Positions 11,348-45,524 of a stretch of DNA of 64,000 nt are shown here, piece after piece. Source of the stretch: Mobula birostris (lineage: Eukaryota); the NCBI RefSeq assembly GCF_030028105.1, contig NC_092384.1:12798316-12862315 (forward strand), read 5' to 3'. A model generated the notes under the pieces. That model was given only the letters and a program-made list of their open reading frames with translations, was not told where the DNA came from and ran no database searches. Position 1 is the stretch's first letter. Every line of letters begins with the position of its first letter. The translations under genes were made by a program, and so were the position numbers.

Positions 11348-11402
11348 ATGACTGCAATGTTTCTGTTCTTGTTTCTGTCTCTCTCGAGGATCACTTGCTC
11401 AG
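11348..11402 (+). CDS. Gene A exon 1: signal peptide MTAMFLFLFLSLSRITCS
   Basis: ATG at 11348, hydrophobic core, phase-1 donor G|gtattt, in frame with the V exon. Confidence 0.75.
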
Positions 11403-11657
11403 GTATTTGTACGTTATTTCAAACTTTTCCAAGTACTAGAATATGAAGAAGAATGATTACCTCAACTCAGTAGAATCTATTGCTTTAATAGATGATTGAA
11501 TGGCGGAGCAGACCGAATGGGGCAAATGGCTTATTTCTGCTCCTATGTCTTATAGTCTTATGATCTGATATACTTCCTACTTTCCATGCCGAAATGTGTT
11601 CTGAAATGTTTAATGCCACGTTGAATACAACTAACCAATTTCAACACGTTTTAATAG

Positions 11658-11978
11658 TTGCTGAAGAAGCTTCGATTATCGTGACACAGATTCCTGATCG
11701 AGAGATTATATGGATGGGAGGAAACATCACTTTCCATTGCATAATCCCTCTTACGTATGACCAGTCAGGAATTGAAGTGCGCTGGCGGAAGCAGGGGAAG
11801 AATGAATACCTACAAAATGAACTTACCGGCAGGAAGAGAATAGGCAGCAAAAATAAAGGAGGGGGCTCTTTTCAACTGCTGAACGCGACTGCCCAGGATA
11901 CGGGAATCTATCAGTGCGTAGTCATGCGTGACGGAAAAATCATAGGAGAAGGAGGAGAATCAAACCTGACAGTGTGTG
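11658..11978 (+). CDS. Gene A exon 2: Ig V-set domain, germline-joined VJ type
   Basis: Acceptor ttaatag|, donor G|gtgagt, 321 nt, phase 1/1. Motifs: ITFHC, VRW, FQLLNATAQDTGIYQC, and J-like G strand GEGGESNLTV. Confidence 0.93.
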
Positions 11979-12438
11979 GTGAGTAGAATGAGTGAGCGGG
12001 AACATCTGAAATTATTATATATCGTTACCATATCACTTTGAGATTTCTGGAAATATAAGGACCCAACAAAATTTGTTAACTCTGCTAAATGCATTATCTA
12101 AAGCTTCGTTTACTGCCTCGTTTTACAATTCAATTTTTTTATACAGAAAAAAAATGGAAAGGTTAGAATGACAGCAGGTATTCTATATTTCATACCAAGC
12201 AAAACTACAAACTGAAGAGCAAGCTAATATAAATCCGAACCAATCTCGGCTTCTTGCGCCCCATTGTGTGAGCTAACCAATATCAGTAATTCATCTGTTT
12301 GGCACTTGAAAAGACAGGCTGATAGGTGCAGATTTACTGATAAAAACACGGTCTTACAGAGGATGCCTTTATTCTCTCACATTCTGTGTTTAATTTCCTC
12401 CCCTCAAAATGTTTTGTTTTACACTTTGTACCCCACAG

Positions 12439-12747
12439 CTGCTCCAACTCCATTGACGCTTTCATCCAGGGTTCTCAAGGACTCATCTGCGACTTTGGCA
12501 CTTGTCTGTGAAACGGCTGAGTTTTACCCTGGAGAATTAACTGTTACATGGTATAAAAACGGTACTACGGCCACAACAGATACAAGTACCTATAAACACG
12601 AAAATACTGAAGGGTTGTTTAAAGTTTCCAGTTCCTTGCAAGTAAAACAATCAGAGGTGAACGAGACTGTTTACATATGTTTGGTGCAACATATCTCGCT
12701 AAGGACTCCTGCCATTGCTATCCACACCGTTCCGAATTCTTACCGAG
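12439..12747 (+). CDS. Gene A exon 3: Ig C1-set domain
   Basis: Acceptor ccccacag|, donor G|gtatga, 309 nt, phase 1/1. Motifs: LVCETAEFYPGELTVTWYKNG, GLFKVSSSL, VYICLVQHISL. Confidence 0.93.
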
Positions 12748-12939
12748 GTATGAAGTGAACACGCAATTAAATTTTCTGACTTGCCTTTGAATTCTAATTT
12801 TATTGGTGTTGATGACATTAGGTGATGAAGTCAATATACATTGCAATATCCCCTAGTTCTAATTTTCTAGAAATAGTCGGCTAGTCCAGACAGCTTTCAG
12901 TGTATGTATATACGGTGGAGTGGTGAGTTTCTACTAAGC

Positions 12940-13930
12940 AGTCAGCTTGAGCCTCCTGATGAGTATTAAGATCTTTGAGTCCCCAGGGCCTAAATGGATT
13001 TACCTCGATCTATTGAAGGAGAGAAGAGACGAAAATGCTGGGGTCTTGACGGGTATTTTCGTGTCCTGCCTCGGCGTAGGTCAGGTCTCGGAGCACTAGC
13101 GAGTGGCTAATGTTGTGTCTCTATGTAAGAAAGGATCAAGGAAAATTCTGGGAACGAAACACTGGTGAGTCTCACGTCAGTGGTAGGGAAATTGCTGGAG
13201 AAAATTCTAACGGATTGGATATATGAGTATTTGGCCGAGTTAGAGAGAGCCAGTATGGCTTTGTGCGGGGCAGCTCGTGACTTACTAACTTGATTGCGTT
13301 TTTAACGAGACGAGAGAGATTGATGAAGATTGGGCAGTGGAAGTTGTCTACGTGGAATTTAGTCATATGTTTGACAAAGTCGCTCGTGGGTGGCCACTCC
13401 AGATGATTAAGGTGTTTAGGGTCTGCGGCAAACCGGCTTGCGCATGGAAGACAGAGGGAAATGGTTCAAGGAACTTATTCGATCTGGAGGTCTGTAATGG
13501 ATGGTGCTCCACAGCGATGTGTGCTGCACATTTTCTGTGGTTTGGGACCTCTGCTGTTTGTGATGTATAGAAATGACTTGGATGAAAATGCAGATGGGTG
13601 GGTTAGTAAGATTGCGAATTATTCAATCTTGATGGAGTTGTAGATAGTGTAGAATACTGCAAAAATACAGCGTGATATAGATCAGTTGGGCAGAAAATGT
13701 CAGATGGTGAGGCAACTTGTAAATGTAAGGTGTTGCACTTTGGCAGGGCTAGTGCAAGGAGACAGTGCCACAAAACTTTTAACAGTGTTGCTTAGTGGAG
13801 AGACCTTGGATTCTAAATCCACAGCTCCTAGAAAGTGTCGATGAGGTTATTAAGAAGGCCCGTTTTTATTAGTCAGAGCGTTGAATTCAAAAGTCAAGAG
13901 GTTATGTTGCAAGCTTATAGAACTTTCAAC
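12940..13930 (+). mobile_element. Old CR1 LINE RT fragment in gene A intron 3
   Basis: Decayed EVVYVEFSHMFDKVARG and LLFVMYRNDLDENADGWVSKIAN motifs. Confidence 0.7.
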
Positions 13931-14244
13931 AAGAGAATATTTCTGAGACTATAGGGACTATGAAGCCTCATATATTGTTGTAATATCAATACCAGTCAAA
14001 CAACATAAACGTTACTACCTTTACTAGTATCTGTTCACCTGAAATCCCATTCGCTTTAACCACAATTCAACACACTGGAAGCTGATAGAGTGCAGTTATT
14101 TCACAGAACTCCGATCATTCAGACCACAAATTGCACTTTTTAAAAATTACTTAAAATCCGTTGAATCAACGAATAATTCCAAAACCTATTCTTTAAATTA
14201 TATCCACTAAACAGAAATCACAATCTACCTTTCTAATATTGTAG

Positions 14245-14355
14245 AACTCGATGGCAAATTTACAACCATCTGGGCTTTTGGATGCGCAATTGGTGGCATG
14301 GCAATTTTGATACTTCTAATTATCGCTGGCAAGAAATGCATTTTCATAAATAAAA
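14245..14355 (+). CDS. Gene A exon 4: uncharged transmembrane segment (ELDGKFTTIWAFGCAIGGMAILILLIIAGKKCIFINK)
   Basis: Acceptor aatattgtag|, donor A|gtaagt, 111 nt, phase 1/1. About 21 hydrophobic residues followed by a KK stop-transfer. Confidence 0.88.
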
Positions 14356-14552
14356 GTAAGTATTGGGCTTATTGTCTGTTTCCAGGTAACACCGTGAGTA
14401 AATAATGCATTTTACTTCCGTTTTCGTGCATGAGGAAACTTCACACGAACAGAATAATTCCAGAACGAAAGTAATTCCATTTTTATAATTGAAATCGTGT
14501 TCTGATCATTTACAAGAGGAAGATCGAGTATGCGATATGTAATTAATGATAT

Positions 14553-14665
14553 CTAACCATATAACAATTACAACACGGAAACAGGCCATCTCGGCCCTTC
14601 TAGTCCGTGCCGAACGCTTACTCTCACCGAGTCCCATCTACCTGCGCTCAGCCCAATATAACCTA
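14553..14665 (-). mobile_element. Short CR1 3'-end fragment in gene A intron 4
   Basis: aaccatataacaattacaacacggaaacaggccatctcggccc is the reverse complement of a typical CR1 3' end. Confidence 0.55.
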
Positions 14666-16631
14666 ATGAACTGATTTATAAAATCCGTGCCGGAGTACTG
14701 TGATATCCATGTCAATTCTAGAGGTAATGAACATAAAGAAGACGCTTTCCGTGTGGAAACGTCTCAGGAAAAATAATTGTACAAATTTAAAGATCCTCAA
14801 TCCACAGAGAGGGTTTTCTCAATGCATTATCTAGCCTGTTCCTTAGGAAACGCAGACGATTGTTCTTATTTGTTGCATCTTAAAATGTATTTCTCTGTAA
14901 GAATTGCTTCTTCACACTGTTTTTAAAGTTATCATTTGCCTGTATCTGTGAGAGTCCTCCAGCAACCCAAGGCCGCCATATTCACAGTTAAGATTCCACT
15001 TCCTTGGAACTCCACACCGCAATGATAATGCCAGTCAAGACAGTGGATCTATACGAATTCCAACAGGACAACGATGGCTCAGCCGATTAACACCCGAGAT
15101 GTAATTGTAATGAGCTCTTCGGACCTGCACAGGGAGCCGAAGGACGCTTAGATGCGAGATTTCTAGAGCACCCAAATTTGATTTTCTTCAAATTTGTTAA
15201 GTTTATTTTCACTGACATGGGTATTGTATGTTCTGTGATTAAACACACTCCCGATTTGCACAGAATCCCACGAGTTTATCAAAATGAATTTAACAAGTTT
15301 AAACCGAAAGCACCAGGAGACTGCATTACAAAGAACGAGGTAAAATACAAAGAAGTCCAAACAATGAACAACTATTAATCAAATCAAGTGCTCTGAAAGT
15401 CTTGGAGCCGATGCTCCCGTGCTCCCATTACAGTGCTCATTACAGTACTCCTCTTCCTAAGTAGCTTAGAGAAATAGAGGGCTATGGATAACCTAGGTAA
15501 TTTCTCAAGTACGTACATGTTCGACACAGCATTGTGGGCCGATGGGCCTGTATTATGCTGTAGGTTTTCTATGCTTCCATGGCCGGCATCTGACGGCCCC
15601 AGTGAGATCTGCGGAACTCGGCAGGCACCTACGAAATTCGAGTGGGACCTCGGAATCTCGAGACAGAGACAACATTGATAAGAACCGGGGAAACATTAAA
15701 TGGGCCATGAGAAAACTAGAGGGCCCCGAGTAACCTTAAAAACGTTGAAGATACTAACGACCTTGAGAACCGAGGATGCCTCGACCATGACAAAGCTTTG
15801 AGAACCGGAAAGACCTTGAACATAGACAAGAAAAGCTCCGACTGTGGACATGAGAACACCTCAAGCCGAGCGATGTCCACACAGTGCTGGGTCCAAGTGC
15901 GGAGGAAAGACAGACTCTGATACAGAGTCAGAAACCACAGTTTATTCATAAGAATTTCAACAGAACATCAGTGGTTCGGTCGAGGAACATTGCGAGACAG
16001 AGCGTTCTCAAAACTAGCATTCCGCGACAAGTACTAGTCAGGCGTCCACTTAAATAATATGAATGACATGGAATCCCAGAGACTAACAAAATAACCTACC
16101 AAACTTAAACAGAAACTACCAGGAGACTGTTCGAGAAAAAAATAGTGCTCTAAAATTCTCGGAGATCAAAGCTCTCCAGCTCCCCGCACAAGCCCGAGGT
16201 GCTCTCTACAGTTCCTACTATGAAAGCAGTCTTGTCTTTCATCTTTGTGAGAAATTTGATCATTATTTTCGTTAAAAACACATATGGATCGAATAAATGG
16301 AACATGTATTGCAGTGTTGCAAGTTTTATCGCATTTCTCGTCTGACCTTCATTGAACCTAATGTTCAATAATGTTCAGTCATTGATTTTCCTCGATGCTG
16401 CAGATGGATGTTTTTATCAAACACTCTGTAAAAGTCTTAATATATCTTAATGTTATGGTGTTCATTCTAGACACAGCCATGTCAAGTTAATACAGCCCTC
16501 TGTATTTCAGCGTTCAGTTCCATAACTTTCCTTAATGTAAATCTAAGCTCTTGTTCCGCTTGAATCGGACCGTCGTGGATAGCCATAAGAATCTAAAATA
16601 TCATATTTAAGTAAATGTCATTCATTTCTAG

Positions 16632-16672
16632 GTAAGCACGGAGATACTGATACTGCCGACCATGAAGATTTG
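16632..16672 (+). CDS. Gene A exon 5: cytoplasmic micro-exon (SKHGDTDTADHEDL)
   Basis: Acceptor ttcatttctag|, donor |gtacgt, 41 nt, phase 1 to 0, which is the bridge needed between exon 4 and exon 6. Confidence 0.75.
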
Positions 16673-17156
16673 GTACGTGTTTGTGCGCATTTTTATACAC
16701 GAATGAGTTTTAAGTTTCAGTAAATATAGGAATGGGGCGAATAATATGGCGGAACATTTCCCGAAAGTAATAATCTCTACCTCGGATCATTCAAATTATG
16801 TTTGCACATTTGCCTGACCGTAGTTCTGACATTGCTGTAAGTGGATATGTAGGAGAAAAATAAATTGGTAGCTTTATTCATAACGGACTTAGATAATTAA
16901 TGTGTGCCAATGCAATCCTTATGTTTAGATTCAGTAATTACTCTTATTGATGTTGACTGAATTACTGAAACCGACATAATTAAGTCATATTTATATACTG
17001 GTCAGAGCCTATGCAATTGGACCAGCATTGTTTTTTTTTATCAATTCCCCTTTCAACATTCATATGAAATCTAGGCTATTCTCCTCACTGACTAATCACC
17101 AGACCATTCGTTACCGCATTTAACAGTCATATAAAATACTTTTATTTCTGACCCAG

Positions 17157-17255
17157 GTTGAAGAGAATAAGATCCTGACTTATGCTGCTGTAGATACGAG
17201 CAATTCCAGCCGGAAGCGGAGACAGAAAGGTGAAGAGGAGTCATCGTACGCACAA
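17157..17255 (+). CDS. Gene A exon 6: cytoplasmic, ITIM LTYAAV and SSYAQ(V)
   Basis: Acceptor tttctgacccag|, donor |gtgaga, 99 nt, phase 0/0. Translates VEENKILTYAAVDTSNSSRKRRQKGEEESSYAQ. Confidence 0.85.
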
Positions 17256-17448
17256 GTGAGATTCTGCAGTACATAATAGGTCATATGTAACACGTGACTC
17301 ATGAAACCTATAGCAAAATGACAATAATTGTTATGGTATTGACACTAGTGGTGCGTTCTAAAGGGGATCGTGGGTGCTTTGACATCGTCCCTGATCAGCA
17401 AGGCACAAGATGATTTAAAAAGTGAAAATGTTCGCAATTTTTTTTCAG

Positions 17449-17580
17449 GTAAAGCAAGAGGCTGTGCAGGAAGGACTGACATATGCTACTGTAAAATTGT
17501 CTGAATCAGGAAAAACAGAAAAGCTCAAGACAAAGAGTAAGAACACGGAGTATGCTGAGCTGCAAAGGGCAAAGCCTTAA
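17449..17580 (+). CDS. Gene A exon 7 (terminal): ITIM LTYATV and ITSM-like TEYAEL
   Basis: Acceptor tttttttcag|, 132 nt ending in TAA. Translates VKQEAVQEGLTYATVKLSESGKTEKLKTKSKNTEYAELQRAKP*. Confidence 0.87.
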   Translation, partial: VKQEAVQEGLTYATVKLSESGKTEKLKTKSKNTEYAELQRAKP

Positions 17581-17974
17581 AAGACCAAAGGAAGACATAC
17601 ATGCAAGAATAAGAATAACATGTAACTAGATAGCGATAATTTCAATTTCCTGGATTTTTTTTTATCCTGCACAAATTTCAATGGAAAATTATTTTTTTCG
17701 GATTCGAAAAGTGACGTAGGCCCGCAGTTGTACTTTTCTGCGAAAGCAGTTGAAGGCTTCATTAAGGCTTCATTGGCTTGTGCTAGCCAAATACCGAAAC
17801 CGACATTCATCTTTAATTATTCAGTTATTTGTCTGCAAATTAGATTAGTGCAACAAAATCTATTTTACAAAAAATCAGTTATTTGAAAACTGAAGAACAT
17901 AATAATTAGGTTTATTGATTATGAAGTGACACGCTAATTAAAGCTAAATGCTGCAAATCCGATTTCATTGATTG

Positions 17975-17980
17975 AATAAA
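17975..17980 (+). terminator. Candidate polyadenylation signal AATAAA for gene A
   Basis: AATAAA about 395 nt after the stop codon. Confidence 0.4.
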
Positions 17981-18559
17981 AATCGCGCCTTGTCTTTTAA
18001 AAGAAAATGAGAACAATATTTTCCTTCATATTTTCCTTTCTTCTATTGTAGCTCATCCTCTTAAGAGTTGTTAGTCAGTACGGGGATCACGTTTCACGCG
18101 AAATTGGCTGGTTCGCTATTCCTTCTTGGATAGTATATTGACAATCCTTTCGAAGTGCGCGGACTCGATTTTGTCTTCTTGAATTATCAATGTACGAAAC
18201 GCTCGATAAAATATTCTGGGGGGAAAGCAGAATCCAGGGATACTGCATGTACTGTAAATTTATTTATGTAAAAATATGAACACAGACTTCTATAAACCGA
18301 CAGTATCAGAATCATGATCTAAATACTGTAAAAATTCGCACGGGCTCTTCAGATGAGATTAGAGCAAGCGGTTTGATTTTTATAATAAAGCCCAAAGAAA
18401 AGAGCGGATAACCTACCATCATTGCATCCAGAACATTATGGTTAGTAGGTTATGTTGTCGGACAGTGATATGGAAACAGAAGCATAAAGTTCCGGGATTA
18501 AAATATGTGTAATTGGTAACAGGAGCGTAGCGTACTCCATGGAACAGTTCTTCGTTTGT

Positions 18560-21500
18560 CTGACATAGAACATAGAACAGTACAACAGAAGAACAAGCCC
18601 TCCGGATCACAATGTTGTACCGAACAAACTAAAATCTGTATAAAAAGCCCAACATCTAATCCTCCCCCACCACAATGTCCATATCCTTCCATCTTCCTCA
18701 TATTCATATGCCTACTAAACGTCTCTTTAAAACCTCTAATGCCTTTGCCACCATACCAGGCAGCGCATTCCAGGCATCCATACTTTGAACATATCCCCTA
18801 TCACCTTCAATACATGCCCTCTGGTATTGTTTCCTGGGGAAAAACATATTTCCTCTCTACTCTATCTATGCCTCTCATAATCTTACAAACCTCTATCAGG
18901 TCTCCCCTCAGACTACACTACTCCAAAGAGAACAACACGTTTGTCCATTCTCTCATGATAACATACGCCCTTTAATTTGGGCAGTATTCTTGTAAACCTC
19001 TTCTGCACCTTCTCCAAAACTTCAACAGCCTTCCTTCAGTGTGTCGACCACAACTGTATGCAATACTCCAGTTGTTGCCGAACTAGAGTTCTATAAATTT
19101 GCAACATAACCTCGAGATATTTAACTCATTGCCTCAGTGAAATAAGGCATGCATCCCATTGCCTACGTAGCCACCCTATCAACCTGTGTAGCCTCTTTCA
19201 TGGAGCTATGAACTCGAACCCCTAAGATCTCACTGCTCAGCAAGGTCCTTGTACTTAACAACGTACTGTCTCCTTACATCTGCCCTACCAAGGTGCCACA
19301 CCTCACATTTATCTGGGTTAAACCCCATCTGCCATCTTTCTGCCTATATCTGCAAATGATCTATATCGAGCTGTATTTGCCAGAATTCTACATTATCCAT
19401 AACTCCACCAATCTTGAGATCATCCGAAAAGTTACTACCCACATTTTCATCCAGGTCACTTATCACAAACGGCAAAAGTTTCAGAACAGATCCCTGTGGA
19501 ACACCGCTAATTACAAATCTCCAAGTGGAATAAGTCCCTTTGACCACTTCTTTCTAAGGCAAGCCAGCTCTGAATCTACACAACCAAAATGCCGCAGACA
19601 TCATGCATTCTAATCTTCTGGATTAGTGTCCCATTGTCATGGTCCGGTCCGTGAAGTTCGTATTCCGGTTCACGGTCCGGTCCAGCGATCCTTGCTCCAG
19701 GTTTTCCTGACTACCCTGTTTCTGGCTTGTTAAGCTCTAATTGAGTCAGCTGATGCTCGTAGGGGCTAACTGCATAAATACCTTCAGAGACCAGGGTGTA
19801 GCGGCTGGATTGTTCTTGTCCTTACTCCTTGTAACCCTTGTTCTGCCTTCTGTTTCCTCGCCTGAAGCCCTGCCTTGTCTTGCCGGTAACTCTCGCCTCG
19901 CCCGAAGTTCTCGTCTCGCCTTGCTTTGCCAGAAGTCTTGCCTTGTCTTGCCGGTAACTCTCGCCTCGTCTCGCCTGCAGTCTTGTCCTGGAGCCACCCT
20001 GTACCTAGCTCCCTTCCTGTCCCTTGCCTCCGCCCAGGTAAACCAGGTCGTCTAGCCGTTACCTGCAGTTGGTTCTGTCCCAGGTCGGGTGGTGATCCGT
20101 ACCCTGCCCAGGAGGAGCCTGCCTCGCCTCCAGTCTCCTGCCTCCCGCCTCGCCTCCAGTCTCCTGCCTCCCGCCTCGCCCTTCCCTAGTTCTGGGGTCC
20201 GAGCCAGAGGCAAGACCCAGGTACTGGGTCCTTGTCCAGTCTCTGGCTCGGAGTCCAAGCCCGGGCTCCTAGCTCTCTTGTCCAGTCCTGTTCCAGGTTC
20301 CTGGTTTTCCTGTCCATGTCCTTGCCATCGCCCTGTATCCTAGTCCTGTCCCTAGTACTTCAGTTTCTGTGTCTTGCACTTGGGTCCGTTCCCAGCCACC
20401 ACCCTATGATACCCATGAGGAATTTAGTCAAATTCCTTTACTAAAATCCATGTAGACAACAGCCACTGTTTTATCTTCATCAGTCTCTCACGTCACCTTG
20501 TCTAAAAACGCAATCAAGTTGGTAAACTTCGGCTTGCCCCACATAAAGCTTCTCCCTAATTAGGCCATGGGTCGTATATACTAACCAAAGAATTTTCTCC
20601 AGCAATTTCCCGATAATTGACGTGAGACTCACTGGCCAGTGATCAATCTTTCGGAACCTCGCTTTTGCCTACAGGGGATACGAAGATACTGTTGAAACCC
20701 CAGCAATTTTGTCGTTTGCCTCCCTTAATAACGTAGGGTAAATCCCATCAGGCTCTAGGGACCTATCCACCTTAATACTCATTAGGAGACCCAACATTTA
20801 AAGACCCTTGACTTTTAAATGTTCTAACATATTTGTACACCCAACGCTGATTTCCTGGTCCTTGATAAATACTGAAGCAAGACACTCGTTAAGTACTTCA
20901 CTCACATTCTCCGCATCCAAGCAACTGTTACCTCTTTATCCTTGAATTGTCCTACCCGGTATCTAGTTATCATCTTGCTTCTGATGCATATATAGAACGC
21001 CTTGGAATAAACCTTAATCCTACTTACCAAGGACTTTTCATGGCTCTGCCTTGTTTTCCAAATTCCTTTCTTTAGTTCCTTTCTCATTTTTTCCTAATAA
21101 ATCACTCCAGTTGATCCTAAATTTCGAAGCTGTACATACTTTTCCTTTCTCTTCCAGACTAAGCTCATCATCTCTCCGGACGTCCAAGTTTCTCTTATCT
21201 TTCCATCTAACAAGAACATACCTTTTCGATACTCTGTGCAATTGATCTTTAAACACCTCCACATGTCTGATGTGGACAGACTAGAAAAAAAGTGCTCCTA
21301 ATTGACTCTTCTTAGTTCCTGCCTAATGCTCTCACAATTTTGCCCTACTCCAATTTGAGGATCTCCACAAGAACCACATCTATCTTTATCTGCAGCTATC
21401 CTGAAAGTTAAAGAGTGGTGTCACTATTCACTAACTGCTCACCCACTGAAATATTAGTCGCCTGACCGGGTTTAATACCCAACACCAGGTCCAGTAACAC
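18560..21500 (-). mobile_element. CR1 LINE fragment(s), split by a solo LTR
   Basis: 3' end at catagaacatagaacagtac. ORF 19344..19547 (SGVPQGSVL...FSDDLKIGG). CR1 text resumes after 20411. Confidence 0.7.
19635..20411. mobile_element. Solo LTR (TG...TA; terminal CA mutated), family shared with 29354 and 36973
   Basis: Starts tgtcatggtccggtcc and ends ctatgata. 5-bp TSD CCCAT at 19630-19634 and 20412-20416. Contains internal tandem duplications. Confidence 0.8.
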
Positions 21501-24759: not shown

Positions 24760-25046
24760 TGTGGCGACCCACTTTCTAGCGCACACGAACCGGCCCACGA
24801 AACAGCGCGCGCAGGCAGAGGGCCGGCCCCAGAAAGGGCGCCAGGCCATCTTCACCAGCAGGGGGAAAATCCCGCGCGCGGGAAGGGTCTGGGAATATGC
24901 ATTCCCCACAGCAATCTTGCCCCAGGGAGGGCGGGAACGGGAAGGCTTTAAAGCAGGCCACGAAGTTTGAATAAATCTCTTTATCGCAACTCCAGTTCAC
25001 CGACTCCGTGTGGTTATTCTAGCACTGTGTGTAGCGCACCGCTACA
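24760..25046 (+). repeat. 5' LTR (287 bp)
   Basis: About 17 substitutions plus one 2-bp indel versus the 3' LTR by manual alignment. Confidence 0.95.
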
Positions 25047-25086
25047 TTTGGTGACCCCGACAGCCCAAACGATATTTGGGCCAGAG

Positions 25087-28000
25087 ATGACCGACGCCGC
25101 ATCTGTTCACGCAGTTTCCTTAAAATTGCCAAGCTTTTGGCCGCTGAGACACCGTCTGTGGTTTGAACAGGCAGAAGCACAATTCCACATTCGGCAGATA
25201 ACCTCGGAGTCCACTCGTTACTACTACGTGCTGAGCTCTCTCGACCAAGAGACTGCTGCACAAGTTGAGGAGTTTATACGGTTGCTCCTGGAGAACGGCA
25301 AATACACAGCATTCAAAGCCCTGCTCATAAGGACTTTCGGACTCTCATGGCGCGAGCGAGCACGCCGCTTAATGCACCTGGATGGTTTGGGAGACAGGCC
25401 GCCATCGGCATTAATGAACGAAATGCTGGCCCTGGCTGAAGGACACAAACCCTGCCTCATGTTTGAGCAGGCGTTCCTAGAGCAACTGCCCGAGGACATA
25501 CGCCTGCTGCTGGCCGACACAGATTTCAGCGACCCCCGGGAGGTGGCGGCCCGGGAAGATGTGCTGTGGAATACCAAGAAGGAGAGAGGAGCATCCGTCG
25601 CACAAATCACCAAGCCGCGTGCCCAACGGCAGACCAGACCAGGCCCGGCAGCAGAGCCCAACGAACAATGGTGCTTCTACCACCAGCGGTGGGGCACAGA
25701 GGCCCACCGCTGTAGACCACCCTGCAAATTCCCGCGAAACGCCAAGGCCCAGCCGCCGCCGATCGCTACGGCGGCTGGCCATCAGGACAGCCTCCTGTAC
25801 GTCTGGGACCAGCAGTCGGGACGCCGATTTTTGGTCAACACCGGAGCAGAGATCAGCGTTTTACCTCCAACGAGTTACGACACCCGCAACAGAAAATCGG
25901 GACCCACCCTGAGGGCGCAAATGGCAGCACAATACGAACCTACGGCACCCGCACGGTGCGGCTAGAGTTCAGCTCCAGCCAGTTCACATGGGACTTCACA
26001 CTGGCCGCCGTGGCCCAACCACTCCTGGGGGCGGATTTTTTGCCAGCCCACAGCCTGCTGGTCGACCTGCAAGGGAAGCGATTAGTCCACGCCAAGACTT
26101 TTCAAACGTTCTCCCTGGGTGAAGCAAAGTTGCCAGCCCCACACCTGGACTCCATCACGCTGTCCAACGATCAATTCACCAGGGTCCTGGCGGATTTCCC
26201 ATCAGTACTGACACCGCAATTCATGGCAGCCATGCCCAGACACGGAGGACAACACCACATCCCGACCCAGGAACCACCCCTCCACGCCCGTGCTCGAAGG
26301 CTTCCTCCGGACAAGCCCTGACTGGCGAAGGAGGAGTTCAAGAAGATGGAGGAATTGGGGATCATACGACGGTCCGACAGCCCATGGGCCTCCCCCCTGC
26401 ACATGGTGCCCAAGGCAACGGGGGGCTGGAGACCATGCGGTGACTACCGCAGACTGAACACAACGCCAGACCGTTACCCTGTGCCGCACATTTAAGACTT
26501 CGCAGCAAACCTACACGGCGCAAGGATCTTTTCCAAGGTAGACCTCGTCGGGGACGACATCCCCAAGACAGCACTCATCACCCCGTTTGGACTTTTCGAA
26601 TTCCTCCGAATGCCGTTTGGCCTGAAGAATGCCGCACAGACGTTCCAGCGGCTAATGGACGCGGTGGGACGCGACTTGGACTTTGCATTCATCTATTTGA
26701 ACGACATCCTCATAGCCAGCAGTAGTCGTCAAGAGCATCTGTCCCACCTCCGCCAGCTCTACTCCCGCCTGAGTGAATTCGGCCTTACAATCAACCCGGC
26801 CAAATGCCAGTTCGGACTCGACACCATCGACTTCCTGGGCCATAGGATTACTAAAGACGGGGCAACCCCTCTGCCCGCCAAGGTAGACGCGGTCCGCCAC
26901 TTCCCCCGACCCAACACAATCAAAGACCTGCAGGAATTCGTGGGTATGGTGAATTTCTATCACCGTTTCCTCCCCTCAGAAGCCCGAACCATGCGCCCCC
27001 TGTTCACTCTGATGTCGGGTAAGGGCAAGGACATTACCTGGGACGAAGAGGCCGCAGCCGCTTTCGTTAAAACCAAAGAAGCCTTGGCAAACGCCGCGGT
27101 CCTAGTGCACCCCAAAACGGACGTTCCTACTGCCCTCACGGTGGACGCACTAACACAGCAGTCGGTGGAGTGCTGGAACAGCTCATCGAGGATCGCTGGC
27201 AACCCCTGGCGTTCTTCAGAAAACACCTACCATCACCCGAACTCAACTACAATGCTTTCGACCGGGAGCTATTGGCACTATACCTGGCAATCCGACATTT
27301 CAGGTACTTCTCAGAAAGTAGGCCCTTTACCGATTTTACAGGCCACAAACCGCTTACCTTTGCGTTCACGAAGATGTCCGACCCCTGGTCGTCCCACCAG
27401 CAGCGACATCTGCCCTACATCTCCGAGTACACGACGGACATCCGGCATGTCTCGGGAAAGGACAACGTCGTGGCGGACGCACTATCCAGACCTACCATAC
27501 AGGCCCTGTCCCAGGGGGTGGACTATGGAGCGTTGGCAGAGGCACAGCAGGCAGACGCTGAGATCCCCAGTTACAGGACTGCAGTCTCCGGTTTGCAGCT
27601 CCAAGACCTCCCCGTAGGCCCAGGTGAGAGGACCCTACTATGTGACATAGCTACCGGCCAACCCCGCCCCGTCGTCCCGGCAGCCTGGCGCCGGCGGGTT
27701 TTCGAATCCATTCACAACTTCGCGCACCCCTCCATCAGGACAACCGTCCGGCTGGTCTCCAACAGGTTCGTGTGGCATGGGCTGCGTAAACAGGTCAGTG
27801 AGTGGGCCAAAACGTGCACGCAGTGCCAAACGGCCAAGGTGCAGCGGCACACCAAGGCTCCGCCGCAGCAATTCGAACCCACCCGCCGGAGGTTCGACCA
27901 CATCCATGTGGATATCGTGGGGCCCCTGCCAGTGTCACGAGGAGCATGGTACCTCCTAACTATCGTAGACCGGTTCACCAGATGGCCAGAGGCGATCCCG

Positions 28001-28670
28001 CTCAGCGACACCACCTCCGAATCCTGCGCCCGAGCACTGATCGCAACCTGGGTAGCCCGCTTCGGAGTACTGGCCCACATTACCTCCGACAGGGGCGCCC
28101 AGTTTACCTCCAGCCTGTGGTCGGCTATGGCCAACCTTTTAGGATCGCAGCTACACCACACAACTGCCTACCACCCACAGTCGAACGGACTACTGGAGCA
28201 TTTTCACCGTCACCTGATGTCGGCTCTCATGGTCCGCCTGGAGGGGCCTAACTGGGTGGGCGAGCTTCCCTGGGTCCTGCTCGGAAACCGCACGGCGCCC
28301 AAAGAGGATCTGCACACCTCGTCGGCCGAGTTGGTGTACGGCGCACCCCTGGTAGTCCCAGGAGAGTTCATACCAGCCCCAAGGGGTCAAGAGGAAGAGC
28401 CCGCAGCAGTCCTGTACAGACTACGGGAGAGGATCGGTAACCTGGCCCCCATACCCACTTCACAGCACGGACAGAGCCCGACCTGCGTACCCAAAGACCT
28501 GCAGAACTGTAAGTTTCTTTTTGTACGACGGGGCGGACACCGGGCCCACGTTCGTGCTGGACATTGGGTGGAGAGAGAAGGTTTTCACGGTGGACCGACT
28601 CAAACCGGCCCATGCGGACTTGGAGCAGCCGGTCCAGGCTCAGGCACTGCGGCGCAGGGGTAGACCTCCC
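25087..28670 (+). pseudogene. Gypsy gag-pol, frameshifted
   Basis: gag MTDAASVHAVSLKLPSFWP; protease FLVNTGAEISV (catalytic D to N); [22 protein letters not shown] and FIYLNDILIAS (YLDD to YLND); RNase H FDRELLALYLAIRHFR; integrase zinc-binding region and HIHVDIVGPLP, TSDRGAQFTS, YHPQSNG. Confidence 0.92.

Positions 28671-32621: not shown

Positions 32622-32624
<3 letters not shown>

Positions 32625-32660
<36 letters not shown>
32625..32660. repeat. (GT)18 microsatellite
   Basis: Read directly from the sequence. Confidence 0.95.
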
Positions 32661-32662
<2 letters not shown>

Positions 32663-37798: not shown

Positions 37799-39344
37799 AT
37801 TCTTCGTGCATTTGATCTCCCAATAGGCAGCACCTCACCCTTGTCCAGATTAAATCCTATCTTCACTTCTCCATCTAAATTTCCATTTGGTCTAGTTCTT
37901 GCAGTGTACTTTGACAACATTCTTCAATGTCCATTTCTCTGCCATTTTTGTGCCATCTTCATATTTACTACTCAGACCATCCACACCTGCATCTAAATAA
38001 CATAGGTGTATTACAAAAACATATCTTTGCGGAGTTCCACCGGTCACAGACTTGCAGTAAAAAAAAATACTCCTGTATCCAACTTTCTGTCGTTTATGAC
38101 CTCGGCAACTTTTTATTCAACGTAACAACTCACGGTAGATTCCTGGTGACTTAATATTTGATACCTGGCTACTGTGAGGGATATTGTCAAGTGCTATACT
38201 GATTTTATGTAGATAATATTCACTGTCCGATGTTGACTGACCATCTTATTCACTTTTCAAAAGTAGGAGCATCCCCACAGAAATCCATGCTATCTGGAAA
38301 AAAAAAACTGTCTTTTTTGTCCCCGTCAAACTTGTCCAATCATCTCCATACCAATGATGTAAGGCCCATTGCGTATGATTTCCTGAATTACCCCAGTTGA
38401 CCTTCTTAAACAGATAAACATCACTAGTTTTCTCAAGTATTCTGAAATCTTACCTTAGCTAATGATTATATAAACATTGCTATCAAGACTCCAGCAATAT
38501 TTTACCTTGCCTCGCTCAATATCATGGGTATTACAATAAAGACTTCAATACTTTTCTACCTCTTTCTTTGTAACAGCAACATGACCTAGAATACCAACAT
38601 ACCTCTCCCTGATCTCAATATTATCTATGCCTATCTTCTTGTAAGTCAGATCTCTCCAATTTAGGAAACACGAGGGTCAAGGATTGTATCGTCTGCAAAA
38701 TTGTTTGTGATTTAGGCCTTCAAAAAGAAAAAAACTGCAGGCTTCACGTTCTGGTGCAGAAATCTGAGATCATCTGAAGAACTGTTTCTTCCGTTAGGTT
38801 TCAATAATCTAGAAGCTGGCGTTTCTGTTCACGGTATATTTGATGCCGAATGACGTGGAAGTTTTACATTCAGCCCAGTACCAGTGCCAGCTTTGGTAAT
38901 CAATCACTCTTTTGTGTGAATAATGGCATTTCCTTTTCTGTTTTCAGGATATTGACCTGAAAGTGTCCTAGAGAACCATAAGGCAATACACCCGAGATGT
39001 CGATAATGCAGACGCATGGAAAATCGTGATTTTGTGCTACTTGTAGCAGGAAGTAGGGGCTATTGGGGTTCTACTCTGTTAATTCTCTTGTGATTATTTA
39101 TGAAGTTAAAACATTCAGATACTTTGTTTAATGAGTAATAATTTTCATTCTTGCAATTTATTTGCTATAAATAAGAATAATGTTTAGCGGCAAAAATATG
39201 TGGTTTTCCTGAAAAACGTGATGAACCTGACGTGAATAACGTGATTCCAATAAATAAGCAAAAATAGCTAATGAGTGCCATAATATGGCTTGGTTCGTTA
39301 TCACTCTTGAATTAATGTCCGTGGAAAGCAGTGTTCACAAATAA

Positions 39345-39452
39345 GAGAAAATCTGTGGATACTGGAAATCCAAGCAACACACACAAAATGCTGGAGGAAC
39401 TCAGCCGGTAAAGAGTATAGTCGTAGTTTCGGGCCGAGACCCTTCAGCAGGG
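39345..39452 (-). mobile_element. Penelope-like pseudo-LTR tail fragment with a degenerate hammerhead core
   Basis: Same family text as 21500-21592 (tgctggaggaactcagc...gtttcgggccgagacccttc). Core reads CTGCTGA...GAAAC. Confidence 0.65.
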
Positions 39453-39454
39453 TT

Positions 39455-39705
39455 TAAGTCCGCTGCTAACTTTAAGAAGTCTGTACATTCTCCCCGTTAC
39501 CGGGTTGGTTTTCTCCGAGTACTTCGGTTTCCACAACCCAAAGAGATACGGTTAGGGTTAGTAGGTTGTGTACATGCATATTGGCACTGGAAGAGTGGCG
39601 ACACTTGTGGGGTGCCTAGCACAATCTTCGCTGATTTGATTTCTCGCAAACAACGCATTTTAGACTTACACGTGACAAATAAAGGCACTTTAATCTTTAG
39701 ATTAG
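39455..39705 (+). mobile_element. V-SINE / HE1-like SINE
   Basis: Central-domain-like text cattctccccgttaccgggttggttttctccgagtacttcggtttcc and tail gtgacaaataaaggc. Confidence 0.6.
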
Positions 39706-40387
39706 CCATACGTAAATTATAAAACCAATTTCTGCCAAATGCTATTTCGCTGTCAATCTTTACTCTTGAGGGATCTAACGTCGAGGACTCACTTGCAGAT
39801 AATCGGGTGTTTGATTCTTTCTTCCATAATTCCCATTCCATAAATGTTTTCAGCTCCATCACAGGATTTATAGTTCTGTTCCAACGTCTGGCCTGTTTCC
39901 CCCCCAAAGCTATTAGAATGTTATCCAACGACCTGTCGGATGGTTTAAGTTCACGAAGCCGAAATCGTCTTTTTCTTAAACAAACTGGTTGTTTTCTACC
40001 ACTAATCGTTGTTTCTTACTGTGTCTGAACTTTACCGCATTCTGACTTATGAAAAGAAATAAAGTACTTAAACTAATTAAAATAGGGATATATGAGTTTT
40101 GGATATCAGTACCTTCCTGTCGTTAATTCAAAGGTCGGTAATATCAACCTCGGTTTGACTGATTCTATCAAGTATCCTATCCTAATGCCTGCGTGGATCA
40201 AAATTTACGAACATAAGCAAACGATTACAGTAACTTGATATAACATTCGGAACTGGGACGAGGCTGCACTTCTCGCAAGTATATTCCATTCTGTAAGCTC
40301 ATTGGATGGCACAAATGACGGACAGGTAGTGTCATACGTCGTTTCCTCGCAGTTCATATCACTGACATTGCTCAGTGATTACAGTTC

Positions 40388-40448
40388 ATGTTTGATGCCT
40401 TCAAGATAACTGTATCGATCACTGACATGTATTTTTTCGCTGCGCTCG
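40388..40448 (+). CDS. Gene B exon 1: probable leader MFDAFKITVSITDMYFFAAL
   Basis: Phase-1 donor G|gtagta 132 nt upstream of the V acceptor, in frame. Only moderately hydrophobic, so the start is uncertain. Confidence 0.5.
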
Positions 40449-40580
40449 GTAGTAACCAACTCGTGGGGATTATTTTCACCGCAGTTTCCTTCAGTTCGTT
40501 TTATATTTCTTTCTGTATCTCTATTTCTCATTCTAAATCTTACTTTGTGTTTTGTAATAATAATTCATGTTCGTTTTCAG

Positions 40581-40895
40581 TAGTTGCTGCCGACGAGGTA
40601 TTTCAAGTAGTCCAAACCCCCGAACGTACCAGATCATTCGTTGGTGAAAATGTCATTTTCAACTGCACAATTTCCAACTCCGAAGAAATGTCAAAAGTCA
40701 ACATTTACTGGTGGAAACTTGGAGAAATAGAGCTCATTCAACCAGATAGCAGGAAATATATTGACATTGGGGAAGAAAAGGTCTCACTGCAGCTCCTGAA
40801 TATCAGTATCTCCGACTCTGGAGTCTATCACTGTGGAATCAAGTTCAGAGGATTAAATGTGGCAAATGGCAGTGGATCACAGCTTGTTGTCAGTG
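40581..40895 (+). CDS. Gene B exon 2: Ig V-set domain, germline-joined VJ type
   Basis: Acceptor cgttttcag|, donor G|gtaaga, 315 nt, phase 1/1. Motifs: VIFNC, IYWWK, LQLLNISISDSGVYHC, and J-like NGSGSQLVVS. Confidence 0.93.
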
Positions 40896-42541
40896 GTAAG
40901 ATTCAGATAAAGTTCAGATCATTTGCGATCTAGATGTGATAATCCAACCCCGTACACGTGGGCTGCGCCTTGCTTTAATATTTACATCAGGAAACAAAGT
41001 CCTCTTTTCCATAAATTGATATCGAAAACACTTGTAGATTCACTTCCTTGGCTATTAACATGTTTGAGTGCTTTGATGGTTAACTTTTTTTTCTCTCGTA
41101 AGCATACAGAAGAGTGTTTTACGTGCCATATTAGGGGGAATGCAGTTTCTGCAATTACATAGCCTTTTCCTATTACTTATTAATGCCGATTATTAAATTG
41201 TTTCAATATTCATAATCCTGACCATCCGAACTACGAATCTCCCGCTAAAGGAATATGCGTCCAAGCATTTCTCCGAAATGATTTTCCATGAAGTGCATGC
41301 CAAATCTCGATGCGATTTGCAGAAACATAATGCGTTTTATTGTTGCTTGCGCCTGACAACACTTAGCAGTTCTTGAAAGGTACATATTTCTGTGAATTTG
41401 GAAAACAGTAAAGGCAACATAGATTCAGCAAGGCGTATATGAGACTATGAGATGATCTTCAAAGCTCTAATATTGCTACTTGACTCAGAATTATTGCCTA
41501 AGGCACCATAGCAAGTGCCATGCTTTTGTTTATTTCAAATGCACTAGAAGAGGCAGACGTAGAATATCACATAAGCATCTCCTGACTTCGACCCCACCTT
41601 CGAATTTGCAACAATTCTGGAGTGTGCACTAAAGATTTACTCTTGCATATGTTCAAACCGCAAGATTTGGCTGAGAGCTCAAAACTTGGGAAAGAAGAGT
41701 GCTGCATCTGTGCCTTGGCCGAAACACTCTGCCTTATATTGACCGATCTGTGTCTGATGCCAGGGGCCTTTCTAGTCACAAATGCACAGCTTAAGGTAAC
41801 CCCAGATGGGAATCCTACTTATTGAGTTCTCATCTGATTTGCTCAAATATGAGTATCATCAAATCACGTGTAATTTCCTTTCTTCCAACCAGCTAAGAAT
41901 GGCTCTCGCAACTGGAGCTATTCTGGAAAATGAAGATTTTTTCCCCTAACAATGTAGATTCCTGAATATATTTCAATCTATTCTCGTGGATGGAAATTGA
42001 TGATATATTCTATTTCTGACGATCCGCAGGTGTGAGCGTATCTTCACAACTTATCACGGAAGTCCTGAAACCCCATGTCCTATTGTTGCAGAGAGGAGAT
42101 TTTTTTTTTTACATACTGTGATACTGTTGGTTACGGAATTAGTCCTTCTATGTTCTATTCAGGGGATCAGAAGATACGGGAATTGGTAGGGTAAACACGT
42201 GAAATTGTTGAGATCCAAAGTGCACTTGAAAACGTGAGAATTACGTTCATTGCTAACATTCAGCTGAGATTTACATACGAAGTTGGCAACTTTTGTAAGT
42301 TGAAGAAATAAGATATGCGATTTAATTAGACAGATATTCGGTAGCGACCCTCTTTTTGCAATTCCATGAACTGTAATTTTCACTACTTAAAATGTAACAT
42401 GGCCATTTAATTCGTAACTGGTTTATTGCTCTCTGATTATAATGCTGCAGGTTTAAAATGGAAAAGCTGCTTGGGCTCAGGGTGTTATTTTAAAATCCAA
42501 TTTTTAATGTAAACTTATAATTATCCTTAATTTTTCATCAG

Positions 42542-42829
42542 CTTCACCAACTCCTCTGCAAATTCTTAGAAATCCATCAACTCTCTCCTGTAATATGGCT
42601 CCATTTTACCCGGCAGGAGTGACTATTATTTGGTATAAAAATAACAAAACCATTTCGAATGGAATAAATACCACTCAACGGCTCAACAGCGCCGGCATGT
42701 ATGAAGCTTCTAGTACTCTTCATGACGCACAGCTTGCCCAGAGCGGTACTGTTTACATCTGTCTGGCAGCTCACATAACTCTGAAAATTCCAGCCATGGC
42801 AGTTTATTTGGTTCCTAATTCCAATCCAG
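42542..42829 (+). CDS. Gene B exon 3: Ig C1-set domain
   Basis: Acceptor tttttcatcag|, donor G|gtaaga, 288 nt, phase 1/1. Translates ASPTPL...LSCNMAPFYPAGVTIIWYKN...VYICLAAHITLKIPAMAVYLVPNSNP, clearly paralogous to gene A exon 3. Confidence 0.92.
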
Positions 42830-43162
42830 GTAAGATATATTTCTTGGCAAACCAGCGTCAATCAGCAGTCTACGAGTGCAATAATTCGACAATGGGGGAC
42901 ATTTGACTTTTAATACATGGGAATAGAAGTTGTCTTGCCTAGTACAGTCAGAGGTAACTGGTAAATACTAATTGGTAAATTTCAATGACATTAAACTGTC
43001 TTAGCTGTTTTCCACTGTACGGAATTGTCTCGTTCATCGCCCTTCCCCTTTTTTACATAGTTAAGCGGTGATGAATGTATTTTCAGCAAATTCAGATAGT
43101 TACTAAGTCTAGTAAGAGGTTTGTTGACAATTTCAAATGTGAATTTTATACTATCCTTCCAG

Positions 43163-43285
43163 ATCGAGACGCCTGGACTTCGATTAATTTTTATTTAAAG
43201 GTTTTTGGATGCATAGGGTTTGCATTGACATTTTTTCTTCTAATGGTCATTACCAGAATCCCGTTCAGGTTCATCAACTGTAGAG
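43163..43285 (+). CDS. Gene B exon 4: transmembrane segment containing Lys (DRDAWTSINFYLKVFGCIGFALTFFLLMVITRIPFRFINCR)
   Basis: Acceptor atccttccag|, donor G|gtaaag, 123 nt, phase 1/1. If this donor is not used, the frame reads on to a stop at 43335. Confidence 0.85.
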
Positions 43286-45524
43286 GTAAAGTACCCTTTC
43301 AGTTTAACACGCAATTTTGTTTGAATGCAGATTGAACTCTAGTAGTTGTTTATGTTCATCATCTGTACTCCGGAAGTGCAGTATATATCTTAAGTTGAGC
43401 GGATTTGTAATGAATTATATATCTAATTTCACTCGCTCTATTACAATTAGATTTATTTAAAGATAGGCAGAAAATATTTCTTATGGTCATATGGTATAAA
43501 AACACTGAACCTTTGAAGGCAGAGTAGACAAGTTATTTACGATTTTCAACCAGCACTAGTACTCCACTGATCGTCACCAGATGATTCGACGGGAAGAATA
43601 ATATCAGGTTACGAAATATTTGATTCGTTTAGATTACTCAATCAATCTAAATTGACATTTGTCTTAGATAATGCATGACATCTTACGTCATTTTCCGAGA
43701 AGTTTTCAAATTTTGCTTTTCTGTCCGAAATAAACGAAGAAGTAAACAATTCGATATATGTTGTTCGCCTGTGTTTGTGTAAGTTTACGTTGTTCCCTAA
43801 CTAAATCACATTAGGGCAACAACACTGACGCAGAAGATGGCACCAAAGCGATTCTTCCAGCTCTGGTGTGTTCATTGTGTCCGGAGTAGCAACGTACCCG
43901 ACATCAACCTGCCTAACACCACTGTAAGCAACTCTGCTGACTAGTCTGAAAATGAATACTTGTAGCCGGATAGCCAGAAGTCCGCTCTCCCGTTTATTTT
44001 CCAGAAGCCCGTTGAGTCTGTACAACTGGACAACTTACTTAAATGGCATTAGAAGACAAAACCTGGCATAATTGACAGTTATAGCATTTTCCCTAACTAA
44101 CTTACCCAAGAGAAACAGCTACTCCTTCGGCAAATATTTAGAAACTAAACTTGGAAATTTTCTCCACTACGTTATCTTTTTGAGAGTGAGGCATTAACTT
44201 AAATTCTTGATTCAGCAACAATTATCTGACTATATCCATGGCAAGATTTCACTGTCATTTCAAGCTCTGCAAAGAAACTTCAAATGTTCGCTCAGATTTT
44301 GTTGGAGCTAACGGCACAATAGTGAGTTGGCACTGCATATGTAAGTTTGCTTTTTATTCTGCACGCATGAGGTAGTTATGGCTAAATATACAAAATAATT
44401 ACAACCAATGCATTTCAATCGGACTTGAATAGATTCAGTTTCTATCCCCACGTCATGTGCAATGCTTTGAAATTTCTGTTTACTTCTACGAGATGAATTC
44501 AGCTTTTGTTGTCATTGATGGGTGACTACGGTGCAATAATTTAAACATAATTAACTGCCTGTTAACTCAGATGACCAGGGCTTAAGAAAACAGCAATCTA
44601 ATTTCAGGCGTTTCTTCGATATTCTTTAGTAATGCCTCCTTGATAAAACATTACAACTGTTTAATGGAATTGTTTTTGGGGCACCAAAAATATTCCATCT
44701 CTGATAAACTCAATGATGAACTAGAGATAGACAATGAAATATTTCAGATTTATTTAACAAACTAAGGGCTCCTTTCACTAAATAAAACAAAATGATAAAT
44801 AAACACACTTCTGCCTGAGAGGTATCATAAAGAAAGAAGATTAAAATATTGATAGAAGTTCACTACGATCTGCATACAGGAAAACTTGGGACATCCATTT
44901 GCAAATGTCTACCTGTTAGGTTAACAATGTTAACAGATAAAAGCAGCATGAAAATATTTTATTGCAGCTATCATACTTCTATATGCGTACACAAAGCAAC
45001 CACTTCCAAATACATAGAATTATTATAACAGAAGGATGTCACACAGACAAATTTGTCAAACACAGCCCTTAGGATCCAGATTGACTGAGTAACTGGACGT
45101 AGATTGCATGCAAGAATGGTTGTGTTTTATGATTTGCAAGATAGTGTGCCTGATAGTTATGTGCTGGGGCCCTAATGCTTTCTAATTTATATAAATGACA
45201 TGCATGATCGCATGTATTGTTAAAGCTAGTATTGACACCAACTATGTAAGAAAACAAGATTAGAAGAGGACAATAGGATACCAAAGAATTACCAAAGAAT
45301 GGGCCAGCTACAGTATAATGTAACTCTGAACTTACTGAATTTATTAAGTTAGGATATATATATTTTTAATATGAAACACAAAATCACAAAATGCAGAACT
45401 TTGAGATGTGGAAGCATCTGGGTGTCCCAATGCACGAGTCACGGGTAGTACCAGCTATTAAGAAATAAAGCAAGCTATTATCATTATCTATATGCGAATT
45501 GAATAACAACATGTATTGAATTGA

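Follow-up and report, generated by a model that had tools for sequence, protein, structure and literature searches.

Two divergent V(J)-C1 membrane protein genes of Mobula birostris and their probable paired-receptor signaling dichotomy

The stretch of DNA analyzed here (the window; 64,000 nucleotides of Mobula birostris, contig NC_092384.1, positions 12,798,316 to 12,862,315 in assembly GCF_030028105.1) contains two genes for immunoglobulin (Ig)-type membrane proteins, called gene A and gene B below. Both are on the plus strand, 23 kb apart, and the rest of the region consists of transposon remains. A six-frame reading and tblastn searches within the window recovered the exons proposed earlier. 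Gene A (positions 11348-17580) has seven exons encoding 355 amino acids, and gene B (40427-48071) has five exons encoding 266 amino acids. The two have a common plan in which a leader is followed by a germline-joined VJ domain, a single C1-set domain, and a transmembrane segment. The leader, V, C1, and transmembrane exons are joined in phase 1 in both genes, and AG/GT borders are present at every proposed exon (Table 1). This arrangement had been described in an initial annotation of the window made from the sequence alone, and the exon borders and tblastn comparisons agree with it.

Gene A and gene B are paralogous and do not rearrange, as had also been proposed. The C1 domains were 41.6% identical (E 3e-23) and the V domains 32% identical (E 1e-12), close to the initial estimate of about 40% for C1 and greater divergence for V; identity of the whole proteins was 34%. 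Pfam recognized V-set domains (E 2e-8 for gene A and 1.5e-9 for gene B) and C1-set domains (E 3e-14 and 1.5e-11, respectively), and tblastn found no third copy of V or C1 in the 64 kb. Rearranging Ig and T-cell receptor (TCR) genes have separate V and J segments and recombination signals, whereas here a single germline exon holds the V part and the J-like part without a break, and the gene B RNA is colinear with it. We considered a heptamer-like GACAGTG at the end of the gene A V exon as a recombination signal and rejected it; these letters are the codons for L-T-V. A Cys preceded by Gly stands at the outer edge of the transmembrane segment in both genes (positions 14287-14289 in gene A and 43207-43209 in gene B) and recurs in many of the relatives described below, with inhibitory-type tails and with basic transmembrane segments alike. 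It could form an interchain disulfide.

Table 1. Exons of gene A and gene B and transposon remains in the window
Feature	Positions	Strand	Description and support
Gene A exon 1	11348-11402	+	ATG at 11348; hydrophobic leader/signal peptide; phase-1 GT donor
Gene A exon 2	11658-11978	+	V-set with degenerate J-like end GGESNLTV, in one exon; Pfam, AG/GT, family alignment
Gene A exon 3	12439-12747	+	C1-set; Pfam; PDB matches to Ig CH domains, UrIg2, and SIRPalpha domain 3
Gene A exon 4	14245-14355	+	Short stalk and uncharged transmembrane segment; conserved membrane-edge Cys (AFGCAIGG)
Gene A exon 5	16632-16672	+	41-nucleotide cytoplasmic exon (SKHGDTDTADHEDL); AG/GT, frame restored, match to Pristis ortholog
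Gene A exon 6	17157-17255	+	First tyrosine pair: LTYAAV, SSYAQ(V)
Gene A exon 7	17449-17580	+	Second tyrosine pair: LTYATV, TEYAEL; stop 17578-17580
Gene B exon 1	40427-40493	+	Signal peptide; Met probably at 40427; contigs start at 40399; joint 40493>40581 (GT..AG) in X3 and X6
Gene B exon 2	40581-40895	+	V-set with J-like end GSGSQLVV, in one exon; Pfam; joint to 42541/2 in four runs
Gene B exon 3	42542-42829	+	C1-set; Pfam; joints on both sides in four runs
Gene B exon 4	43163-43285	+	Transmembrane segment (YLKVFGC), then RIPFRFINCR; joint 42829>43163 and donor 43285 in all four runs
Gene B read-through	43286-43335	+	Alternative tail GKVPFQFNTQFCLNAD-stop; unspliced contigs 43256-45516
Gene B alternative last coding exon	47611-47675	+	DVSETNVRPGYSPVSAASELQ-stop; AG acceptor; matches tail of M. 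hypostoma isoforms; beyond the aligned RNA contigs
Gene B last exon in RNA contigs	48064-48198	+	Codons D, R; stop 48069-48071; 3' untranslated region; AG acceptor
Long terminal repeat (LTR)-type retrotransposon	24967-28663	+	Degraded; gag-like DUF7041, reverse transcriptase, RNase H, integrase zinc-binding domain, integrase core; open reading frames frameshifted
Long interspersed nuclear element (LINE) remains	54835-57779	+	One open reading frame with a GDSL-lipase-like part and an apurinic-type endonuclease
LINE remains	59398-60486	-	Reverse transcriptase with an ALKBH8_N-like segment

The predicted cytoplasmic tail of gene A has four tyrosine motifs arranged in two pairs. In the first pair, the Tyr of SSYAQV is 23 residues downstream of that of LTYAAV; in the second, the Tyr of TEYAEL is 24 residues downstream of that of LTYATV. 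Human SIRPalpha has a similar tail layout. The transmembrane segment of gene A has no charged residue, and the exon translation thus agrees with the initial annotation in both the uncharged segment and the four motifs. The exons proposed there stood, with the addition of a 41-nucleotide exon (exon 5) that had been overlooked and that is required to keep the frame between the transmembrane exon, whose end is in phase 1, and exon 6, which begins in phase 0. The peptide encoded by exon 5 (KHGDTDTADHEDL) corresponds to KHGKTAGHEDLG of P0007, the ortholog from the sawfish Pristis. Gene A is 68% identical over 309 amino acids to a Pristis pectinata RefSeq model, named 'SHPS-1-like', that has the four motifs too. 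RNA runs X1 and X2 contained 0.26 and 0.25, respectively, of the sampled words of positions 11300-14400, where the exon fraction is 0.257.

Gene B is spliced and expressed in two species. We aligned contigs from four RNA runs (X1, X2, X3, and X6, from two organisms) to positions 40150-46149 and found the transcripts joining its exons that the initial annotation had named as the way to check them. Run X1 had no differences inside the exons of gene B. Runs X2, X3, and X6 were approximately 1.5% different and had a 9-nucleotide insertion after 42573; by protein match, this second organism is the sister species Mobula hypostoma. The insertion (between 42573 and 42574) encodes Arg-Arg-Glu and lies in the A-B region of the C1 domain, near the N-terminus, where gene B is seven residues shorter than gene A. 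The leader intron after 40493 is 87 nucleotides long and in frame, and was spliced in two runs and retained in others.

The spliced transcript of gene B in the RNA contigs ends in a short tail. Loose contig ends after 43285 mapped uniquely to 48064, behind an AG, in all four runs. With 43285 spliced to 48064, the coding sequence ends ...FINCR-D-R-stop; M. hypostoma XP_062923439 ('tapasin-related protein-like'), which is 96% identical to gene B, ends FINCRDR as deduced from the RNA. An AATAAA is present at the end of the 3' untranslated region, directly before a gap of Ns at 48199. The initial annotation had placed the end of gene B at 43335, which turned out to belong to an intron-retained form of lower depth (10-15, versus 31-98 on the transmembrane exon). 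The alternative last coding exon encodes a tail that is found in M. hypostoma RefSeq isoforms X1 and X3-X5 with Cys replacing Tyr. The Tyr of this exon, in RPGYSPV, has Pro at position -2 and is therefore not part of an ITIM (immunoreceptor tyrosine-based inhibitory motif). The tail is 13 amino acids, or 32 with the alternative exon, and has neither an ITIM nor an ITAM (immunoreceptor tyrosine-based activation motif). We found no ITIM exon downstream of gene B, either by tblastn with the gene A tail exons over the 64 kb or in the two real downstream exons.

The transmembrane segment of gene B (YLKVFGCIGFALTFFLLMVI) has a Lys where gene A has Trp, four residues ahead of the Cys that is present in both genes. 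The initial annotation had noted this Lys and the lack of a visible tyrosine-motif tail, and had named a downstream ITIM-bearing exon as the finding that would speak against it; downstream exons are indeed present and none of the 3' ends has an ITIM. The transmembrane exon is identical in M. hypostoma. Over the coding sequence, gene B and the copy in the sister species differ by seven nonsynonymous and three synonymous changes and a three-codon indel (dN/dS of about 0.7), which is approximately the divergence of the introns.

There were two other observations in the RNA from this locus. Part of the last intron of gene B (45350-45950) had an RNA word depth of approximately 86-840 in all four runs, compared to 10-15 around it, with many loose contig ends at 45514-45516 and 45775. 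Its appearance is that of a repeat transcribed in large amounts. In addition, in all four runs a contig enters the window at 42422, 120 nucleotides upstream of the C1 exon of gene B, from sequence that is not in the window (CCCAAATTTCTTGATACAGTTAGTTAAAAA). This could be a chimeric contig, a repeat-derived transcript, or an insertion allele. Among the transposon remains, the degraded LTR-type element occupies much of the interval between gene A and gene B.

Gene A and gene B are members of a large, fast-evolving multigene family of cartilaginous fishes that extends from chimaeras to batoids, and do not represent a new gene type. In a full HMMER scan, the C1 exon of gene A matched 803 proteins at E<1e-3, including dozens of V-C1-transmembrane proteins of 240-420 amino acids. 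All of the single-C1 members whose names were looked up are chondrichthyan (from Callorhinchus, Heptranchias, Heterodontus, Mustelus, Scyliorhinus, Chiloscyllium, Pristis, Mobula, Amblyraja, Narcine, and Hemitrygon), and the chondrichthyan host inferred in the initial annotation was correct. The non-chondrichthyan proteins looked up among the matches were multi-C1 or major histocompatibility complex (MHC)-type models outside the family. Word-indexed searches, one using a full-length relative as query and one a 27-sequence profile, returned chondrichthyan proteins only and gave no bridge to tetrapod SIRPs. Throughout the family, the V exon contains a J-like motif, GxG(S/T)xLxV, of which gene A has a degenerate form. 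Members in one species are on one chromosome-scale contig; two in Callorhinchus are 174 kb apart, and the C. milii loci that we examined for synteny showed further family members only.

RefSeq already contains predicted relatives from at least 12 cartilaginous fishes, under six unrelated names: 'tyrosine-protein phosphatase non-receptor type substrate 1-like' (SHPS-1-like), 'signal-regulatory protein beta-1-like', 'tapasin-related protein-like', 'immunoglobulin lambda-1 light chain-like', 'NCR3 ligand 1-like' (NCR3LG1-like), and 'FcRn-like'. The literature in the searchable library that we used contained no description of the family. The suggestion in the initial annotation that it might be undescribed has to be qualified, since the sequences are already in RefSeq under these inconsistent names. 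The searches also returned giant predicted proteins from sharks, frogs, and a turtle, with 4-16 C1-type domains and some with an internal transmembrane segment (P0001-P0004, P0147, P0088), which may result from the fusion of gene models or else form a multi-C1 family of their own. One of these, P0147 (Caretta 'SHPS-1 isoform X2'), was dropped as a SIRP reference because its model is atypical, with multiple C1 domains and a transmembrane segment in the interior.

The predicted ectodomain belongs to the general V-C1 class. We modeled the gene B-type ectodomain with AlphaFold2, using residues 53-262 of the M. hypostoma protein and a 32-row alignment (predicted local distance difference test score 92.9). 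Among Swiss-Prot models, the best global superpositions of this model were with domains 1 and 2 of SIRPalpha (TM-score 0.76, root-mean-square deviation 3.4) and with SIRPbeta1 (0.73), and the best E-values were those of B7-H6, at the top, and TAPBPL. The best solved structure for the model was B7-H6 (Z 17.0, root-mean-square deviation 3.4, 25% identity), and Ig light chains, with a different elbow angle, came next. These modeled similarities leave the structure undecided among SIRP, B7-H6, TAPBPL, and Ig light chain, which explains the inconsistent automatic names. We dropped PDB sequence searches with single exons and family profiles as a ranking: multi-domain Ig, titin, and contactin chains dominate them through summed scores, and these searches therefore cannot rank SIRP against B7-H6 or Ig. 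We also rejected gene B as a tapasin-related protein (TAPBPL). TAPBPL has a large N-terminal domain ahead of its Ig domains; in the 266 amino acids of gene B this domain is absent and the signal peptide is followed directly by V, and the structural match covers only residues 191-411 or so of the 451-468 in TAPBPL.

A basic residue in the transmembrane segment goes with loss of ITIMs across the family. We compared 41 distinct transmembrane cores of single-C1 members, counting as ITIM-rich those with at least two motifs of the ITIM type or the related switch (ITSM) type, and scoring Lys or Arg in the outer twelve transmembrane positions. None of the 17 ITIM-rich members had a basic residue there, compared to 13 of the 24 members that had at most one such motif (Fisher p 1.5e-4). 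This p-value overstates the independence of the sequences and is only a guide, since they are related automatic models, truncated in some cases, and two of the 13 stem from misplacement of the scored positions. Two styles of basic segment recur: one with Arg directly before the conserved Cys ([IL]RC), and an R...VDH type.

Gene A and gene B are in different parts of the family tree. In a maximum-likelihood tree of 49 ectodomains, gene A was in a clade (support 100/99) with proteins of Heterodontus, Scyliorhinus, and Chiloscyllium, one of which has a basic transmembrane segment, and gene B was in a clade (95/87) with proteins of Heterodontus and Mustelus, one of which has ITIMs. A 95/93 branch separates the two clades. 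Given these well-supported different clades and 34% identity, we conclude that gene A and gene B are old paralogs and not a matched pair with near-identical ectodomains and opposite signaling parts. The presence of sharks and the ray in both clades suggests that the split between them is older than the divergence of sharks and rays, and the two proteins probably bind different ligands. Closer sister pairs of an ITIM and a basic-transmembrane protein are found elsewhere in the family (for example, P0120 with P0125, and P0148 with P0013), and the tree requires at least nine changes between the two states. As read from the motifs, there have been repeated switches of signaling type, of the kind also known from other paired-receptor families. 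The initial annotation had called gene A and gene B a tandem pair with opposite signaling; the contrast between an ITIM-type tail and a basic transmembrane segment with a short tail is there, and the matched pair is not.

We consider it probable that the window holds two divergent members of a non-rearranging V(J)-C1-transmembrane receptor family that has a paired-receptor signaling dichotomy like that of the SIRPs. Gene A would present a ligand-binding VJ domain on a single C1 stalk and, with its uncharged transmembrane segment and two tandem tyrosine pairs, would be of the inhibitory type; when phosphorylated, the tyrosines would recruit the tandem-SH2 phosphatases SHP-1, SHP-2, or SHP-2L and so damp activation. 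Inhibitory signaling by gene A is likely, judging from these motifs. Gene B, with the same ectodomain plan and a short tail, would be of the activating or the non-signaling type. In the activating case, the Lys in the outer third of the transmembrane segment would pair with an acidic residue in the transmembrane segment of an adaptor that carries an ITAM (one like DAP12 or FcRgamma), and we hold this adaptor-dependent activation only tentatively. The two genes would be neighbors in a cluster.

Several points weigh against reading the window as a SIRP-like receptor locus, in addition to the limits of the comparison of transmembrane cores given above. The exon joints of gene A are supported indirectly, by splice borders, frame, word coverage, and the Pristis model, and RNA-contig joints are from gene B alone. 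SIRPs have two C1 domains, whereas each of these genes has one C1 exon and the RNA joins that of gene B directly to the transmembrane exon. The comparison with SIRPs is one of design and fold; structure and sequence do not separate SIRP, B7-H6, TAPBPL, and Ig light chain, and PDB profile searches were dominated by Ig heavy chains. The flanking parts of the window are transposons only and so give no synteny. The data show the gene structures, the splicing and expression of gene B, the domain types and motifs, membership in the family, and the link between basic transmembrane segments and ITIM loss; the steps of signaling (phosphorylation of the tyrosines, recruitment of SHP phosphatases, pairing with an adaptor) are inferred from motifs, and cell types and ligands are likewise a matter of inference. 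The Lys of gene B, which is near the outer membrane edge, might snorkel instead of pairing with an adaptor, and constraint on gene B is weak, as its coding sequence has diverged at about the rate of the introns.

These last two points also bear on the main alternative to adaptor-dependent activation for gene B, that it does not signal and either serves in adhesion or as a decoy in the manner of SIRPgamma, or is being lost by drift, and that its transmembrane Lys has no adaptor partner. The tail is very short, as in SIRPgamma, and the leader intron and the last intron were often retained in RNA contigs. We think this role unlikely, given that the reading frame of gene B is intact and its RNA spliced in both species, that the transmembrane exon is unchanged between them, and that a basic residue at similar depth recurs in independent short-tailed members. 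The divergence of gene B fits a fast-evolving immune receptor as well as it fits weak constraint; ectodomains of immune receptors usually evolve fast.

It is quite improbable that the two genes encode not receptors but ligands of the B7-H6 (NCR3LG1) type, displayed for NKp30-like receptors, even though B7-H6 was the best match of the gene B-type ectodomain among solved structures and had the top Swiss-Prot E-value, and some family members are labeled NCR3LG1-like. The copy numbers of B7H6 and NKp30 reportedly co-vary from sharks to mammals. Against a ligand role, the global superposition was better with SIRPalpha (TM-score 0.76) than with B7-H6 (0.65-0.66), most of the long-tailed members are labeled SHPS-1-like, and a buried basic transmembrane residue together with a short tail, a combination found repeatedly in contrast to ITIM-rich tails, is the signature of a receptor. 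We know of no such dichotomy of charged transmembrane segments and ITIM tails in B7 molecules, and a ligand role and signaling can coexist. Membership in the PRARP or UrIg lineage in place of a SIRP-like family is less probable still and would surprise us. The general plan of a non-rearranging VJ domain, one or more C domains, and a transmembrane segment is alike, PRARP and UrIg have been cited as VJ-bearing relics (PMC10751288), and UrIg2 is among the better PDB matches of the C1 domain; however, UrIg proteins have at least three C domains (9-11 in UrIg2) and no paired-signaling design, compared to the single C1 here, and all of the named close relatives of gene A and gene B are chondrichthyan.

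The reading as divergent SIRP-like paired receptors bears on the history of antigen receptors. Outside this family, C1-set domains occur only in antigen receptors, MHC, beta2-microglobulin, tapasin, and SIRPs (PMC2785349), which is why non-rearranging V(J)-C1 genes, among them SIRP, UrIg, PRARP, and B7-H6, attract study as remnants of the precursor of antigen receptors. Rays have intact single-C1 V(J)-C1 receptors of apparent inhibitory and activating design, one of them with RNA support for its splicing. The analysis provides corrected models for both genes, a consistent reading of the family behind its six automatic names, and a defined gene set for dating the origin of SIRP-type paired signaling; the current picture of receptor mechanism is unchanged. 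According to the literature, a C1 domain always has a partner domain with which it pairs (PMC2785349). The family might be the cartilaginous-fish counterpart of the SIRPs in a simpler V(J)-C1 form, near the hypothetical non-rearranging precursor of antigen receptors, with chains paired through C1 and the membrane-edge Cys into TCR-like homo- or heterodimers, possibly of an ITIM chain and a basic-transmembrane chain. We regard this as a long shot.

Among known systems, the SIRPs are closest in design. Like them, gene A and gene B have a V domain at the N-terminus that includes a J-like strand and precedes C1, type I topology, and no rearrangement. SIRPalpha carries ITIMs and signals through them, SIRPbeta has a basic transmembrane residue and uses DAP12, and SIRPgamma has a four-amino-acid tail and does not bind DAP12 (PMC12975943); the division between tandem ITIM-type pairs and a basic transmembrane segment with a short tail (PMC12975943, PMC2785349) is the same in the ray genes, and many of their relatives have SHPS-1-like or SIRP-beta-1-like names in RefSeq. 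The ectodomains of SIRPalpha and SIRPbeta are highly homologous (PMC12975943), in contrast to the 34% identity between gene A and gene B, and the family of these two genes is much larger and, in the searches made, appears confined to cartilaginous fishes. The initial annotation had proposed SIRP-like or VJC1 receptors; the VJ-C1-transmembrane layout and the SIRP-like design hold, and with a single C1 the genes are not SIRPs proper.

Other systems share parts of this plan. B7-H6 has the V-C1-transmembrane architecture and differs in being a ligand of NKp30. UrIg and UrIg2 are likewise genes of cartilaginous fishes with a split leader, a non-rearranging VJ exon, and C1-type domains; they have at least three and up to eleven C domains after the VJ domain and are single genes linked to the MHC or to an antigen-receptor complex (PMC12227049), without the design of ITIM against basic transmembrane members, whereas gene A and gene B each have a single C1 exon. 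KIR, LILR, PILR, CD300, and the teleost NITRs are built from V, I, or C2-type domains and differ from the family of gene A and gene B in this respect; like it, they have ITIM members beside short-tailed members with a charged transmembrane segment, and have switched repeatedly between the two.

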